A stretch of 61,097 nucleotides of DNA, filler included, from Platydemus manokwari (taxonomy: Eukaryota): NCBI GenBank assembly GCA_037951405.1. It is 5 parts of 5 records of this genome, joined end to end, with 100 filler letters (N's around TTAATTAATTAA, not from the genome) between each part and the next. Parts side by side here need not be neighbours in the genome. Positions count along the whole stretch, not along the records: positions 1 to 9,147 come from JBBMOY011292651.1; 4 more parts are not named here. The stretch is one strand, 5' to 3'. The translations under genes and the position numbers were made by a program. The notes under the pieces are model-generated. The model saw only the letters and a list, made by a program, of their open reading frames with translations, was not told where the DNA came from and did no database searches. Below are positions 1 through 9,147 of this stretch, one piece after another. Numbering within the stretch: the first letter of the stretch is position 1; each line of letters opens with the position of its first letter.

Positions 1-1012
1 TGGAAACATTTAAAACAAAATCCATACAGTTACTAGACGAATCTACTTGAATTTTTTTATGATAAATGTAAGAAAAACAGGTGAACAATAAATAAATGAT
101 CTTAATATTTAAAAAGTTAATAAAACAAGCGATTTCTGAAATAAAAAAGTCATTAATCACTACAATCTATGACAGGGTACTTCATTTGTTTTCCGCGGTT
201 ATCATTCCAACTGATTACATCATATCTCTTATAATGATCCTAAATTTTAATTCGATTAGATCATCTACCAAATGATTTTATTTCATTTCAATGAAAATAA
301 AATGAAACGATTGTTTTTCTATGAACACTGTTGAAAGATACACAAATGATACTTCATCTATTTTTGTATTTATGTTTTATTAGTAATAAATATTATAATA
401 CCAAATGAAAATTTATTATGTGCATACACAGAATCATTTACACTCAATCGATTTGAATAGAATTCATTTTGTTAAATTGTGTTACTCTAATAATTTTCAA
501 AGAATTTATTTTAATAATTTCCGGAATATATTGAAAGAACAGACAGGAATTTCAATTATTAATCACCGATCTATTATTATGTATGTGTTCTATAGAGATT
601 TTTAACTGTTTTTCCTTACATATAAAAATTTTGTTAACTAAATTATTGTTTTTTTTAATTAAAGCTTTTTGCGTATTCATATTTCTTATTTTTTTCCTTT
701 TTTGGACGAGCTGATTTGATATATTCATATGTTGCATTGTATCGCTCTTATGTAGCTAATATGGTAATTTAAGCATTAAGAATATTGTAAGAATTGTGAT
801 GTCCCATCGAATATCTGATAGATAGATTTTGTAGCACTTTCTACTCATCGGTAGATTCGGAAAGCACCTCGAATTTACCATTTAATAATTCACCATTTTA
901 CTTGTCACCGATTTCATATCAGTACATTGTAATTTTACATTTTATTGAAATATATTTAATTAATTATTAAATGAATTATTGAACAAAATTATTCTGTAAT
1001 TTTATTTAAAAG

Positions 1013-1150
1013 GGTGAGAGGCTGTCACACGCAGTTGGATGTGCGTTTGCAGTTTGCCTTGAGAAAAAACAACAGCGAGAAAAGGAAAGCGTTGATGTTA
1101 CATTCAATGACAGCAAGACTAGCTTCACCAGATTAGGATCTTTCAGACAG
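1013..1150 (+). CDS. numb: Single internal exon of Numb/Numb-like (C-terminal end of the PTB domain)
   Basis: AG|GGT...CAG|GTAATT, 138 nt, phase 0-0. It translates to [46 protein letters not shown], matching the conserved Numb [20 protein letters not shown]...FTRxGSFR stretch. It is absent from the ORF track. No other Numb exon was found in the contig. Confidence 0.92.
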
Positions 1151-1596
1151 GTAATTTTAATGTGCATTGAAAAGTATTTTTATTTTGATTAATACATTGT
1201 AATTAAATTAAATTTGAAAATTCTATTTATTCATTTCAAAAATATTCTTCCGTGACAATTTTCGACAAATTGTTGTTTATTTCATGTATTTATTCATTTT
1301 CATCTGACGACACACGATTCATTGTACGAGATTGTCGGAAATAGCTGACGGTGTTTCTTCCAGTTGATTAGAATTATTGAAATGAATATCACTAATCAGT
1401 TATAACGTCAATATTTTCATATTCATTTTTGCTTAGATTTGATGTGTTATTTATATATTAATATAATAATAATAATTATTATTATTTTTTCACATTGCCA
1501 TTTTTGTAATAATTATTAATATTTTTATCGATTTTTATAGTTTGTTATTAATAAAATTTTACCATAATAATAATTATTATTATTCTATTACTATAG

Positions 1597-4500
1597 ACAT
1601 CGTTCGATAATTGTTCACAACTAATTCTGAAAGCAATCGAAAATAAAAATCCAACCATTCGAATGGAAACATTGAGTTTTCTTTTGCGTATTGCTAAAAC
1701 ACCGATTGGACATGCATCGTTAAAGAAAAATTTCAAATCTATTATGCCCGAACTGAGAAAGACGTGTGATGATATGGATAAAAAAGTGCGAGAACAAACA
1801 TTTCAATTGATTGGAGAGCTGATTTCTATGTTGGGAGACAAACAGATCAATTCATTTTTGGAAAATATCGATCCATCCAAAATGCAATTGATCAAATCTT
1901 TCGTTTCTCAATCGTCAAATCCAATTGTTCAAGAATCGATAATTGTCCACGAAGAACCTAAATTATCCATAAGACAAAATGTCGAAATTGTCAAGGAATC
2001 CGTGGCAGAAGTCTCCAAAAAGCAGCCGACCAAGCCTCAACTTAAATTAACTAAAGAAGTTCTCATTTCAGAACAGGAATTGATGGAAAAATATGTCCAG
2101 TAAAATTGAGTATTGATGGGCTTGATATTCTTATTATTGGTCAGGTTGTTGGGTAAAGAAGTTGTCGACAAATTTGTCAGTCAGGTTTGGAAGAATCGAA
2201 TTGAAGCATGTGATAAAGTTTTCCAATACGTTGAATCACATGAAATCGATCGAATGAGTTGTCAAATTATCACTCAACTGATCCTTATTAAACCCGGACT
2301 CAGAGATAGCAACATAATGGTTGGGTTTTTTCGATTATTCGTGATTTTATTCGATTTTCTTTTTTCGTTCAATTTTGATTTGTTTTGCCAAGTGACGATT
2401 TTCGATTTTTTTAGGTTGTTCGCAAACGATTACAGATTTTGCAGGAAATTTTTCGCAAATGTAACAATGGTCCATCGATATTGATTAGTCAGATTTGTTT
2501 GGGTGAAATTGTCGAGAAGATTGGTGACGTGAAATTGGGAGCTTATGCTAAAGAAACGATTTCCGTTCTGATCTCAACGATGCCCGATTTTGTTAACCAA
2601 TTGATTGTTCAATGCTTGCATCAGTTGGTAGAGAGCAAGTCTATTCGATCTGTGACAGAGAATATCGATTGGTTGATTGAATATTTGTCAAATCACGGAT
2701 CCAAGTATGCTTGTATATATTGATTTTGCTTATTATATGATTAATCAAATAATAAAATATCAAATTTCCATTTCAGATCAATATGGTTCCCATTTATTTA
2801 TTCTTATAAGGCCATTTAATTTCGGAATTCTATTTATTTAAAAATTGAGATATTTAAGAGTTTGTGCTTTAATAAATATAAAAACATCGGTAACTGATAA
2901 CACGGTTGGATAAGAATTCATATTTCTAAATGTATATGATTGACCAATCAGATTAGATTAACAATCATTGTTTAAAATAATGATTATAAATCGATGTATA
3001 CTACTTTCAAAATTGCTGGAAATAATTTTATGGAATATTAAGAGTCACAAGTACGTCAACATCTCTTGAAATTAAAATTAAATATTTCATAAAAGTATAT
3101 TGTAAGCCAATCAATTTCCATTACATCGGTTTTCTCACTGGCGCGTTTGCATTAATATTTTCAAATTCATTGTCTGAGCTAATCCTCTTATTGAACCAAT
3201 TTTTACTACACAATCTACTCGATAGTCGTTTGAAATTTCTAAATGGGTTCTTATGGCACTTTCAAAATCAATATGTTATTACGTCTATTAATTGCCGTAT
3301 TTTCTTATTACACAATCCATGAATTTAAACATGTTCCTTTGTCAAGGTGAAAGTATAATGTTGATAGAAATGTCGATATTACAACAGCAAGGAGAGTTTT
3401 TTTTAAATGTACTCTTAAATAGCGGCTCATTCATGAGAGTTGCAAAGGTAAAAAATCGTGTTCACATGTTTTCCATAAATTCATCCTTGATTGTATTACT
3501 CGGTATTTGTTAGTAAATTGTGTCAGTTGTTGTTTTATTAATTTTATCACGCAACTTCACTCTAGTGCAACAAATGCGTTACGAAATAGGTGACAGTTTG
3601 CGCCGGTTTATTTTCATTGGTTTATTATTTTAGTGAATGGATGTAACGGTTTAGAATTATGTAACAGTTGATAAACAAATATTTTTTAACGAAATAGGGA
3701 TGATGTTTCATTTCCTAATTGTAATAACTAAATTGTTTTACTCATTGTTTGTAAGTAAGCTATAAGCAAGCAACTGTATAAAATATAACTAGACTAGATT
3801 TTAAAAAAAATTAATGAAATTTATTATTCGATTATTTTCACATATCGAAGATTTGTTATGTCATTTCAATAATTAAATTATTTGTGCAAGTTTCTTGCTT
3901 TTGTTTTAATAAATATTTGGATTATTTTTCATCATTTATTTATATGATGACATTATTACAAACTTTCTGTATAATGTTACGTAATAATATTATTTTATAT
4001 TTATAACTAATGACAATGCTGTGTAGATCTCTTGTTGTCAAAGATGTCCTACCTCTCGTTCGACAATTATTGTCATCTTCAAATTCAACAGTTAAACAAA
4101 ACACCATCATTCTAATTGGTGTATTATATAAGACACATGGAAAATGTATTCCGAACTATTTTGAATCGGAAAAACCTGCTATCGTTGGTATGATTTCGAA
4201 CGAGGTTAACAAAATCGATAAAACTATGAAAGAAATGAAGTCAAAAATCGAGTAATTATTATTGTTGATTGATTTATTTTAGCACTTTCATAATCGATCA
4301 TTCTTTTATTCAGATTAGCAGATGTCAAATCTATAAAGGAAAATCACGTGGATGATCGACGTTAGAATTTATCAATATCCAATCATTTATATTTATTTGT
4401 TCAGGTTGTTTCAAAGAAGCGTCACCTATTTATAATTCAATCGCTCCGAATGGAAATGCGATTAAAGACAGCCTTCATGTGAATAATTTATCTTTGGATA

Positions 4501-7071
4501 CCGAGGAATTCTCCAATGAAGATAAATCTATTACTGATGATTATGACAGGTGATTGATTGACTTGAATTTTATGATTATTGATTATTTGATTATCTGATG
4601 AATTCGTAGAGCAATCAAAGACAGTTGTCGTTCATTTGTGCTCGGTAATATTGTGTCATTTATTCGTTAATTGTTTCAATTTGCTATCAGAGATATGTGA
4701 TAAATTAGCCGTTTACACCGATCAATACTCGACGAGTCTATTTCAAAAGGAATTAAATCTCTTTTTCTCCTCAATGAAGGCCATTTGCGACCCCAAAATG
4801 AAATCATCCATCAACATCCTATTGACATCTTTACAAAACAGTTGGATTGATTCGGAATCTGTATCGACACAGGTTGTCATTATTTGTTGAAGAGAAATTC
4901 AATTAATCAATTCCAGACGGTCACCGGCGAGATTGTGGAAGAAAATTCTCCGAAATTCGTTCCGGTATTCGATGGATTCGTTAATATGCGAAGAAATCGC
5001 AGGTGATTTTATATTTAAATTCCCGAGCATTATTTAATCAATAATTGAAAGGGCATTTTCCAAGATCGATAAAGAAAATGTAGCTCCATTGGCACAAATC
5101 GATAATCATAATGAAATTGGTTCACATCATTCACCCACACATATGAAGGAGTAATTCAGCTCTAATTATATGATCATGTTTATTATTTTTTCTAGTGCCC
5201 ACCAGGACTGCGTCACACCGTTGTCAATGGTTACAGAAATCATCCGAGTACTGGAAAATGAAAATTCCTCATATATTATTTACGAGAATTTATCGAAATT
5301 AAAGCGCATATTAAAAGGTTTCTCATATATTGATTGATTGATTTTTATATTGATTTGATATTAATAATAAATGTGATTGGTTCAGATGATTCCAAGAATC
5401 AGATCCATAATTGTATACCAGAATTGATAACATCATTATCTAAACGGGCTAGATTTCTCGCTAATATTGTTGTACCGAGCAGTGTTCAGGAATTGATACA
5501 AATTGTAGCCATAATCAATAGTGTGAGTTTTTTGAATTTTTATAAAATACTAATGGTGATGTAGTTTTTCATTTTATATCCGGTAATTTAATGTCATGAC
5601 AACATAACTTTATATGTTCATATATACTGGATATTATATTGATTTCCTTTTGATTAATTATCACAGCAAGTTTATGAGCAGTTGAAATTAAAAGAAAATC
5701 AATACTTTATTGATTTTTTATTATTGATTTTATATGATTAATATTTTTATTATTTATTTTATATGATTAATATTTTTACTATTGATTTTTTATTATTAAT
5801 CTTTTGTTATTGATTTTTTGCCTTTTTAATATTTTTATTATTATTTTTCATTGTCATTGATATGTAAGCATTATTATTAATATTTTTCTGTTAACATCAT
5901 TTTCTTAATCATTATTATTGAAATATTATTATTTTTTTTTATTAAAATTACTAATATCTTTATAATAATTATTATTTTCGTTATTCATTTCATTGTCGTT
6001 AGTTTTATTCATAGTATAATTATTAAAATATTATTATTAAAATAAAATTTTTGCCCACAACAGCTTTTAATCTTATTTACAGTCGGCTACTGAATATATC
6101 ACAGCTTCGCCTCACATCTCTTTTGGTAAACCTCTTTGGCTTTTCATCATCGTCTTAATTTTTATGGTCATCTGATTGTTTGGGATTTCCCAGTAACATC
6201 ATAACTTACTTGATTTGTTTGTCGGTTTCTTCCGAGTCACTTCCCCCTTGATATTGCAATAATCGCTCTCCCGTAATATATTTTTTACAATTTAATCCCA
6301 TTATTTATTATGAATAATATTATTATAGTTTTCATACAAAGTAGACAGTAAACCCATATTAATTTTATGTGATCACTGTAAATACCTTGTCGAAAAAACA
6401 ATCTAATCTCAATTTTTCATTATATCTATATTTTTCTTTAAATATTGCTTTGGAATGGTTTCTAAATCGAATATTTTATTGCTAAAATTTTAGATTTATT
6501 CAAAACCGGATTTTGTACAATTGATTACTGAACCTGTTTTATCGTCATTATACACACAGTTATTCTCGATTCTAGCCAGTCAGAAGTTTCAATCCATTGA
6601 TATTTTCGTCACACTAAGAAAATCGATTTCTTCTCTCATTTTAGACATCACAACTTCGTCATCATCGACTGAAGTACTTTGCTCTATGTTGAGACTTCTT
6701 TCTCTGGCAATAGATGATTCGACCAATCAAAATGTTTACATTAACGTACTCATAAAGAACACTTTAAAAATTTTAGATATCATAAAAACCAATTCCTGCG
6801 TCGATTTAGATTTTTCTAAAATCCTGAAATCATTGAATCAGCCATTCGTGGATTTTGCCGACGATTCGGAGAAGATTGGTAGCATGGCTTTTAAAACGAT
6901 AAAAACCATTGTCGATGTGTTGACAAAGAAGAAAAAACTGCAATTATTAGACTATTTACCAGACGTAACATTTGATATTTGGTATAATTGTTGTTAATAA
7001 TTGCATTCTAGAACAATGATCAACTCACGAAATATATTTATAGATGCTTTAATCGAATAAACGGCCAATGA
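1597..7071 (+). CDS. CKAP5: XMAP215/ch-TOG family microtubule-associated protein, divergent and shortened, 5'-partial (14 exons, ~858 aa visible)
   Basis: Phase-consistent GT-AG exons: 1597-2099, 2145-2319, 2415-2704, 4027-4251, 4314-4360, 4405-4549, 4610-4644, 4691-4872, 4917-5002, 5052-5150, 5196-5317, 5386-5522, 6494-6964, 7012-7071 (TGA). TOG2 end: ENKNPTIR...VREQTFQLIG. TOG3: WKNRIEAC...KPGLRDSNIMV...VEKIGDVKLG...EKPAIVGMI. Exon 6494-6964 resembles the C-terminal cryptic TOG region. Confidence 0.85.
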
Positions 7072-7096
7072 TATGCTTGTATTATTTATTTCATAC

Positions 7097-7102
7097 AATA
7101 AA
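7097..7102 (+). promoter_or_regulatory. Putative polyadenylation signal of the CKAP5-like gene
   Basis: AATAAA about 25 nt after the TGA, followed by a T-rich tract. AT-rich background weakens the call. Confidence 0.45.
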
Positions 7103-9147
7103 TTCTGAACTTTTATCATATTTTTCATTGTTTTGCTATTTTTATTTGTTTATATTCCATAATAATATATTATACATAGATTAAATTTTTATTTGTAATG
7201 AATTGATCTCAAGACTTAAGCATTAACTGGATTGGCTAAAAACTTGACGTCATAAAGTTAATTATTTTATATTTATCACTCAAATTATTGGTTGCAGTAA
7301 TCTGATAATCAATATTTATTCTTAATGAAAAAATCAATTTGGAAATTTTCATTCCATCATACAGATATATATATAGGACTTTTAAAGTCAGAAATTCGGA
7401 CTGAATTGATTTTGAAATCTTAAACACCCACCCAAAAATCAAAAGAATGAATGACAGATAGTAGGCAATGTCAATAAATCGAAAAGTAAGCACTAACTTG
7501 ATCAGGAAATTGCCAAATACATGGTAACATCTAAGATTCTTTCTAATGATTTTTATTAAATTAGTTATAAACACAAGAATACTATAAGACTGAGTATGAA
7601 AGCTAATTTTCGTTTTTCAATTTAGCTTGATGTATCTCTATCGCTGGGTAATATCGGACACAAGGGATTGTTTAATTCCATTAGATATTTTAATGTAAAC
7701 AGTGATTTAGTAACAGTGATATAGTATTCTACGATGGTATTTTTGAGCAAGTATTAGTTCTATTTTGCTTTAAAACAAAGCGATTCTGCTAAAGAAAAGT
7801 ACATTTTTGTTTATATTTATAGCCTCTTACCAAATCTAGCTTGATAATCTGGTAACAACAGAGGTAATAATTGCACATCTCCCTAAAATATGTCAACTCA
7901 AATCATTCATAGGGACACTGAAAGCATCGGGTAAAATATAATACTTCTAAGTGCACGCATGGTTGATACCGTGAATATGACGATACCTCAGAAAACAGTG
8001 AATTTATTAGTGGCAATCACATTACTTACTTATCAAGGCCAAGCGATAATTAATTCAAGAGTCGAATCACGTACTGTACTAGGCATTCATAAAATGATGG
8101 GCCAGACAAAGTGCAAGAAAAAGACAACATCGGTCAGTAGGACGAAGTCCTTTCTCTCAACAAATAGTTAGATATAGCACAGAACAAGATTCTAATTTGT
8201 AGAATTGCACTGTTCTAATGATTGTTAATATCGTGAGTTCTACACTGCCTGTAGAATTGATTCAAATTATACTATAAGAGTTACAATGCAAAATAAAAAG
8301 ACCTAAATTGAGATTCAAAATTTTTTTATGAATAATAATAACAATGTACAAAATGATATATGGTTATCTGCTATCCTTCAAAAGTTGTCAAAATAATATC
8401 TCAATCAAACTTATTTAAACAAAACAAAACTTAATATACATCACACAAACAATGTTAAGATTCAATGGATCGACAAGAAAAATTTCAGATATAGAACCTC
8501 CGTTGTATTGATAATAATAAGAATTTCCATATAAACTTTGTAGTATTTTCACTCAATGACCCAAATTTTTATTTATTAATCCTTTACTTTTGTTTCTTTT
8601 CTTTCTATAAATTAAAATTATCCTTCAATGGATCAAAAGACGAATTAAGCTTTTTATTATTTTGTTCTCATAGATTCAGAAGATTTACAAATCTCTGAGT
8701 GATTTTTTAATTTCCCTACTGCTTATATACTGTTTTTGTTCTATATGGACTATGAATAATTTGTATTATTTTCTTTTGCCTTATTGGATCATAAAATTAT
8801 TTTCTTTTTCCTAATCTGATTTAAAATTTTATTTATATGACAATAATTTGATAGGTTCACAGACGATTCACAGAAAATCGACATCCTTGCTAAATGACAA
8901 ATTTGAAATGTGAGGTCGGATTCCCCATTTCGAGATTTGATCTGCACTCTTCTTTGAAATTAGTCTGTTCACGATTGCAAAGAAAAAACCAAAATCTTTC
9001 AGAAATTAGGAAGAGGCTATTTTATTATGAGGTTGTTTCATTCTTTGATATTGTTGGGATAGCATGGAATGTCTTGTGCTCTATTCAGATAGTGAAGAGA
9101 GCGAAGACGAGAAAATCCCATATTCGATAAAAACATATAGTGAATGG

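Follow-up and report, generated by a model that had tools for sequence, protein, structure and literature searches.

Two ordinary genes, numb and an XMAP215-family gene, may have been placed side by side by assembly on a contig of Platydemus manokwari

The locus

We analysed a stretch of 61,097 nucleotides (nt), filler included, from Platydemus manokwari (GenBank assembly GCA_037951405.1), here called the window, in which five parts of five records are joined end to end; the locus that concerns us lies in the first part, positions 1 to 9147, taken from contig JBBMOY011292651.1. The window is AT-rich, with a GC content of about 0.12-0.38. On the plus strand of this contig stands one exon of numb, the gene for the PTB-domain endocytic and cell-fate adaptor Numb, and beyond a gap of 446 nt begins a series of exons from a gene with TOG domains. 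A preliminary description of this DNA raised four readings of the arrangement, namely a chimeric PTB-TOG gene, two interleaved genes, a duplicated numb exon and a misassembly. We find that both exons are real, that they are not natural splice partners, and that the 5' third of the TOG gene and the remainder of numb lie off this contig. With a probability of roughly 0.5, their adjacency is an artefact of assembly, either a false join or a collapse, within positions 1448-1595. The features around the meeting point are as follows.

1013..1150, plus strand: Numb exon, encoding the last PTB helix and the conserved GSFRQ motif (from PDB matches, tblastn and intron comparison)
1151..1447, no strand assigned: AT-rich, unique, non-coding stretch after the Numb donor (shares a run contig with the Numb exon; no coding match)
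1448..1595, no strand assigned: low-complexity tract that runs right up to the TOG acceptor, where a false join or a collapse may have happened (from depth, contig breaks and repeat content)
1597..2099, plus strand: exon 1 of the visible part of the TOG gene, encoding the second half of TOG2 (about HEAT repeats D-F) and a linker (from Pfam, Msps TOG2, P0002 and L001, the last two introduced below)

The Numb exon is an intact, stop-free exon of 138 nt, translated to 46 residues, and it is in phase 0 at both ends, with its acceptor (aaaag/GGTGAG) at 1012/1013 and its donor (AGACAG/gtaatt) at 1150/1151. Among all solved structures searched, it matches solely the PTB domains of Numb and Numb-like, in their last helix; the best match is 5njj residues 132-156 (E 1e-8, 22 of 25 residues identical), with 2nmb, 3f0w and 1wj1 also found. 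Identity to numb exons from metagenomes is 76-80%, tblastn gives E 3e-21 to metagenome Numb, and no decay is seen in any of the 46 codons. Translation, the PDB match and the exon boundaries thus bear out the preliminary description in its claim of an intact Numb exon with a phase-0 donor at 1150. Capture of this exon by a mobile element was considered and rejected, as there are no flanking terminal or direct repeats.

The first visible exon of the TOG gene, at 1597-2099 on the plus strand, scores 38.3 bits on the Pfam profile XMAP215_CLASP_TOG (PF21041), for which the curated cut-off is 27.1, and matches Msps TOG2 of Drosophila (2qk2) at E 3e-12. Its phase-0 acceptor (ctatag/ACATCG) is fixed at 1596/1597 by an in-frame TAG at 1594-1596, and its donor (CA/gtaaaa) lies at 2099/2100. 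The acceptor that had been described at 1597 is therefore upheld by Pfam, by Msps TOG2 and by the stop codon before it, and the 446-nt, same-strand gap was also given correctly.

Neither gene is completed within the contig. With three Numb proteins taken from metagenome loci and four exon queries, tblastn against positions 1-9147 returned matches at 1013-1150 and nowhere else, and the remaining PTB fold and C-terminal Numb region (..TLTERL.., NumbF, DPF/NPF) were not found in the contig by tblastn or motif scans. Pfam gave no match on the upstream and downstream segments of open reading frame (ORF) that were tested. The earlier statement that the gap holds no TOG 5' exon and no further Numb exon agrees with these tblastn results for the Numb proteins and with those for the N-terminal exons of the ortholog, to which we now turn; by these searches, neither kind of exon occurs anywhere in 1-9147.

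The natural partner of the first visible TOG exon

Alignment of exon 1 runs over residues 130-230 of the 242 in Msps TOG2 and positions 129-224 of the 230 in the Pfam profile, so the exon begins in the middle of a TOG domain. An exhaustive protein search with this exon found three close relatives, P0001 at 58% identity, P0003 at 45% and P0002 at 39%, beyond which came the general XMAP215/Msps/ZYG-9 family at no more than 31%. In the ortholog P0002, residues 287-685 are colinear with exons 1-4 of the visible gene (1597-4234), residues 287-460 corresponding to exon 1; by this alignment, exon 1 is the second half of TOG2 with its linker and exons 2-4 are TOG3.

What should precede exon 1 can be seen in L001, a 1745-nt Logan contig (SRR33002330) from a related species that encodes P0003 and carries a compact copy of the same gene. 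There, a phase-0 intron of 46 nt separates the exon that encodes the first half of TOG2 (672-977, with ..DAAAMT at its end) from the next one, which begins TSLDNC.. at 1024. The exon at 1597 begins TSFDNC.., and the intron is identical in position and phase. The next intron, after the equivalent of 1597-2099, also has the same phase in L001. This shared position and phase means that the natural partner of the acceptor at 1597 is a TOG exon. The exon for the first half of TOG2 is 64% identical between P0002 and L001; yet neither residues 1-286 of P0002 nor the 5' exons of L001 have any tblastn match in the window on either strand, leaving about 400 codons of 5' TOG exons absent. As a separate observation, L001 has a GC content of 53% against 28% here, with introns of about 45 nt and with matching intron positions and phases at both ends of the exon, and the clade covers very different base compositions.

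These results bear most directly on the proposal that upstream numb exons and 1013-1150 are spliced at 1150/1597 onto the TOG exons, to give a true chimera of PTB, half of TOG2, TOG3 and the C-terminal domain, in which Numb cargo would be tied to microtubules. The two exons do lie on the same strand, 446 nt apart, with canonical splice sites and with phase 0 at both boundaries. But any phase-0 donor would fit this acceptor, and chance alone would bring matching phases in roughly one case out of three, so the match is weak evidence. The junction would fall inside a TOG domain and not at a domain boundary, at an intron that in L001 lies between two TOG exons, and the half domain that it leaves, with three HEAT repeats out of six, would probably not fold. 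P0002 has TOG1 and TOG2 sequence upstream of the junction point and no PTB, and a Numb motif occurs in 0 of the 150 best TOG relatives; across P0002, those 150 relatives and 23 numb loci from other animals, no link between Numb and TOG was found. A literature search for a Numb-XMAP215 fusion also found none, and is uninformative since 'numb' also matches 'number'. We know of no described Numb-TOG fusion. Given the mid-TOG2 start, the intron shared with L001 and the lack of any fusion in relatives, we find this first of the four readings unsupported and give it only a very slim chance. Were it true, such a chimera would have a new protein architecture in which the recognition of Numb cargo is coupled to the growth of microtubules, and would be one of the rare live cases of exon shuffling.

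Numb loci of other animals

To place the Numb exon among its counterparts, we compared it with the 23 numb loci of assorted animals (L002-L024) obtained from a metagenome scan with the exon. One of these, L009, a numb locus of vertebrate appearance, entered only batch comparisons of all fetched loci, and presumably differs from human NUMB at several residues. An intron directly before GERLSH (..ag/GG.GA.) recurs in the numb loci that keep introns, and the acceptor at 1012/1013 is therefore the standard one. At the other end, a donor directly after GSFRQ occurs in 0 of the 23 loci, in which the equivalent exon continues into.T(L/I)TERL.DPQ or stops earlier, after ..KTS. The intron directly after ..GSFRQ may thus be a gain specific to this lineage, or it may be a sign of rearrangement. 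Neighbouring numb exons in other animals are spaced from about 50 nt to 3 kilobases (kb) apart, and in two loci (L003 and L004) there is no further numb exon within 10 kb downstream, so a long numb intron after this exon would not be unusual. TOG exons lie near numb in 0 of the 23 loci, with flanks of up to 10 kb.

The unmatched donor is one of the points that could suggest that the exon is a stray duplicate, copied with some flanking intron into an intron of the TOG gene while a working numb gene stands elsewhere. Such a duplicate could be inert and recent, or it could serve as an in-frame cassette of 46 residues between the two halves of TOG2 in the TOG mRNA. That the contig holds a single Numb exon is in keeping with this, as is its length of 138 nt with phase 0 at both ends, which would preserve the TOG frame. 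Against it, there is no decay over 46 codons; the acceptor stands at the position that is standard in other numb loci; and terminal or target-site repeats that would point to mobile-element capture are absent. This reading, too, has to suppose that TOG 5' exons stand upstream of the contig. We consider a duplicated exon unlikely. A slim chance, smaller than that, goes to the wider proposition that the adjacency is real and that the numb exon is spliced into TOG transcripts in some form, whether as the 46-residue cassette or as a join of numb 5' and TOG 3' sequence. If so, a microtubule polymerase and a cell-fate adaptor would have been caught in the act of exon shuffling, in a lineage whose proteins are very diverged.

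The tract between the two exons

The sequence that separates the Numb donor from the TOG acceptor ends in a low-complexity tract, 1448-1595, in which a 49-nt unit occurs twice at a spacing of 98 nt. The unit has a self-complementary core, (ATA)3(ATT)4, and the TOG acceptor follows directly on its second copy. This DNA occurs in one public run only, which is not RNA and which is probably the source of the assembly. In that run, one k-mer contig covers 48-1447 (depth 9.8) and another 1614-3786 (depth 13.4), with two short contigs and a masked repeat between them. Summed depth reaches 180 in 1401-1600 against about 12-27 in neighbouring bins, and many contigs diverge on either side, 10 of them at 1564 and 19 at 1584. 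By this excess of depth, the diverging contigs and the duplicated unit, the tract sequence is repeated elsewhere in the genome. No listed run contig spans 1448-1595, and none contradicts the join; the contigs overlap in the assembled order. They probably stem from the assembly's own data, and similar breaks occur inside the TOG gene. The run's records are at low depth, 3-13x, at which such tracts are error-prone.

We propose that a single internal numb exon has been placed beside the 3' two-thirds of an XMAP215/Msps/ZYG-9-type microtubule polymerase gene by an error in this tract. Two unlinked loci would have been joined inside the palindromic, AT-rich sequence of 1448-1595. Alternatively, a local collapse between repeat copies would have dropped the TOG 5' exons, a variant under which true nesting of the TOG gene within an intron of numb could also be the case. 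We infer an artificial join from what was observed at the locus, that is, the identities of the exons, the mid-domain start, the shared intron, the absent partners and the repeat. The intron lengths of the TOG gene argue in the same direction: 11 of its 13 introns measure 44-95 nt, so a splice partner more than 1.6 kb away, across a foreign exon, would be atypical.

Several observations weigh against an assembly error. Another low-complexity tract, at about 3786-3946, was crossed with exon order kept, since exons 3 and 4 on either side of it are consecutive in P0002, and low-complexity sequence therefore does not as a rule mislead the assembler. A further tract, at about 5700-6060, was also crossed, here with frame continuity as the only support. 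The repeated cores, at about 21-49 nt, are shorter than ordinary reads, and the path of the window is a valid walk through the run contigs with 30-nt overlaps. Finally, introns of 1322 and 971 nt occur elsewhere in the TOG gene, and another long one could therefore precede 1597.

If the adjacency is real, the two genes could interleave on the same strand, each transcript skipping the exons of the other. The TOG 5' exons would then lie upstream of the contig, so that a TOG intron longer than 1.6 kb would enclose the numb exon, and the next numb exon would lie beyond 9147, with the 3' part of the TOG gene inside a numb intron. The numb exon, intact and with good splice sites and conserved residues, looks as it would in a working gene, and the visible TOG part is an intact frame of 858 codons; in other animals, the intron that follows this numb exon can be longer than 10 kb, as in L003 and L004; and base composition is the same on both sides. 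The AT-rich tracts crossed elsewhere in the contig, one with an exon order confirmed by the ortholog and the other with the frame kept, speak for this arrangement too. Against it, same-strand interleaved exons are, as a matter of general knowledge, rare, and an exon of 138 nt with phase 0 at both ends and strong sites would be hard to skip within a TOG intron. Transcription of numb would have to read through the end of the TOG gene, the equivalent TOG intron in L001 is 46 nt long and empty, and TOG exons were found close to numb in no case among the 23 loci. We therefore regard interleaving as doubtful, if clearly less so than a duplicated exon.

Of the readings listed in the preliminary description, we thus regard interleaving and duplication as less probable and favour misassembly, because the two genes connect only across a repeated, palindromic AT-rich tract where run contigs break. 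A PTB-TOG novelty is an unlikely account of the adjacency; these look like two ordinary, unrelated genes, placed together probably by the assembler. We suggest as a caution that, in this low-coverage and AT-rich assembly, adjacencies across (ATA)n(ATT)n tracts should not be taken as gene structure without long reads or RNA.

The TOG gene and its relatives

Downstream of exon 1, the TOG gene was modelled by tracing open frames and GT-AG sites by hand, with a check by script, and the joined model served for counting stops. The remaining exons are these.

2145..2319, plus strand: TOG exon 2, start of TOG3 (from Pfam, P0002 alignment, homolog match and frame)
2415..2704, plus strand: TOG exon 3, middle of TOG3 (from P0002 alignment, homolog match and frame)
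4027..4251, plus strand: TOG exon 4, end of TOG3, after a 1322-nt intron (from a weak HEAT match, with P0002, homolog and frame)
4314..4360, plus strand: TOG exon 5, linker (from frame and GT-AG continuity only)
4405..4549, plus strand: TOG exon 6, linker (from frame and GT-AG sites)
4610..4644, plus strand: TOG exon 7 (from frame and GT-AG sites)
4691..4872, plus strand: TOG exon 8 (from frame and GT-AG sites)
4917..5002, plus strand: TOG exon 9 (from frame and GT-AG sites)
5052..5150, plus strand: TOG exon 10 (from frame and GT-AG sites)
5196..5317, plus strand: TOG exon 11 (from frame and GT-AG sites)
5386..5522, plus strand: TOG exon 12 (from frame and GT-AG sites)
6494..6964, plus strand: TOG exon 13, helical domain that XMAP215-family proteins have at the C-terminus, after a 971-nt intron (from homolog match and frame)
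7012..7071, plus strand: TOG exon 14, closed by the stop codon TGA (7069-7071; from frame and GT-AG sites)

The visible gene thus has 14 exons in 1597-7071, which together give 2577 nt and a frame of 858 codons with zero internal stops and GT-AG sites throughout. Within exon 13, positions 6506-6913 match residues ~1552-1688 of a homolog of 1824 residues (E 5e-7). The two introns outside the 44-95 nt range, 2705-4026 and 5523-6493, are AT-rich and of low complexity. Except for its absent 5' end, the gene looks functional and ordinary. From 2100 to 7011 it has the appearance of a minimal-intron gene, and its second long intron carries tandem arrays with periods of 14 and 29 at 5707-5852.

Between TOG3 and the C-terminal domain there are only about 284 codons, in exons 5-12 (within 4252-6493). 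TOG4 and TOG5 were not detected in this interval, and exons 5-12 match no TOG profile or homolog; to judge by sequence, these two domains may have been lost, or may have diverged past detection. If the missing 5' part amounts to about 400 codons, the whole protein would have roughly 1,250-1,300 residues.

The nearest named relatives of the TOG exon are scattered, among them a mollusc, Capsaspora, nematodes and ticks, and the closest relative of all, P0001, sits on a contig of 1161 nt. A metagenome scan with the TOG alignment found nothing, and exact look-ups of three ORFs of the window and of P0002 found no record. In a word-index protein search, the TOG exon likewise returned nothing, and the exons that encode the first half of TOG2 found no entry besides the ORF of L001 itself, blanks that mean little; this search missed P0001, which has 159 residues, is 58% identical, shares many 5-residue words and is present in the collection, and in this lineage its blanks are unreliable.

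Downstream of the TOG stop, in 7100-9147, we recognised no gene, RNA family or tRNA, and Rfam and tRNA scans were empty. GC content rises slightly at 7950-8250, and a short acidic ORF (..SDSEESEDE..) at 9064-9147 runs off the end of the contig.

Comparison with known systems

The locus resembles the chimeric or collapsed contigs of low-coverage, short-read assemblies, in that pieces of two genes meet only across a short, repeated, self-complementary, AT-rich tract at which the k-mer assembly breaks. It differs from them in that the artefact is a proposed one in this case, and in that the order of exons is preserved across another tract of this kind in the assembly. There is also a likeness to the nested and interleaved genes found in animal introns, since a foreign exon on the same strand stands within what would be an intron of another gene, but known nested genes usually lie whole inside one intron, whereas here each gene would need exons flanking those of the other.

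Taken separately, each gene has familiar counterparts. The Numb exon shares with Drosophila numb, human NUMB and NUMBL the C-terminal PTB helix and the ..TFTR.GSFR. motif, nearly identical to those of solved Numb PTB domains, and its phase-0 intron before GERLSH is placed as in the intron-containing numb loci of animals. It differs from those loci in standing as a single exon, with a donor after GSFRQ that is unmatched in 23 of them and with the other PTB sequence and the C-terminal half off the contig. The TOG gene, for its part, belongs to the XMAP215 family (XMAP215, ch-TOG, Msps, ZYG-9 and Stu2), by its TOG domains, for which Msps TOG2 is the best structural relative, by the match to P0002 over the second half of TOG2 and TOG3, and by its C-terminal domain. 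It departs from the family in that its visible part begins inside TOG2, with TOG1 and the first half of TOG2 off the contig, so that it lacks the full TOG1-TOG2 pair, which is the tubulin-binding core. Its domain count appears reduced, and the estimated size of its protein is closer to that of tick and nematode relatives, with 1,300-1,450 residues, than to that of ch-TOG, with 2,000.

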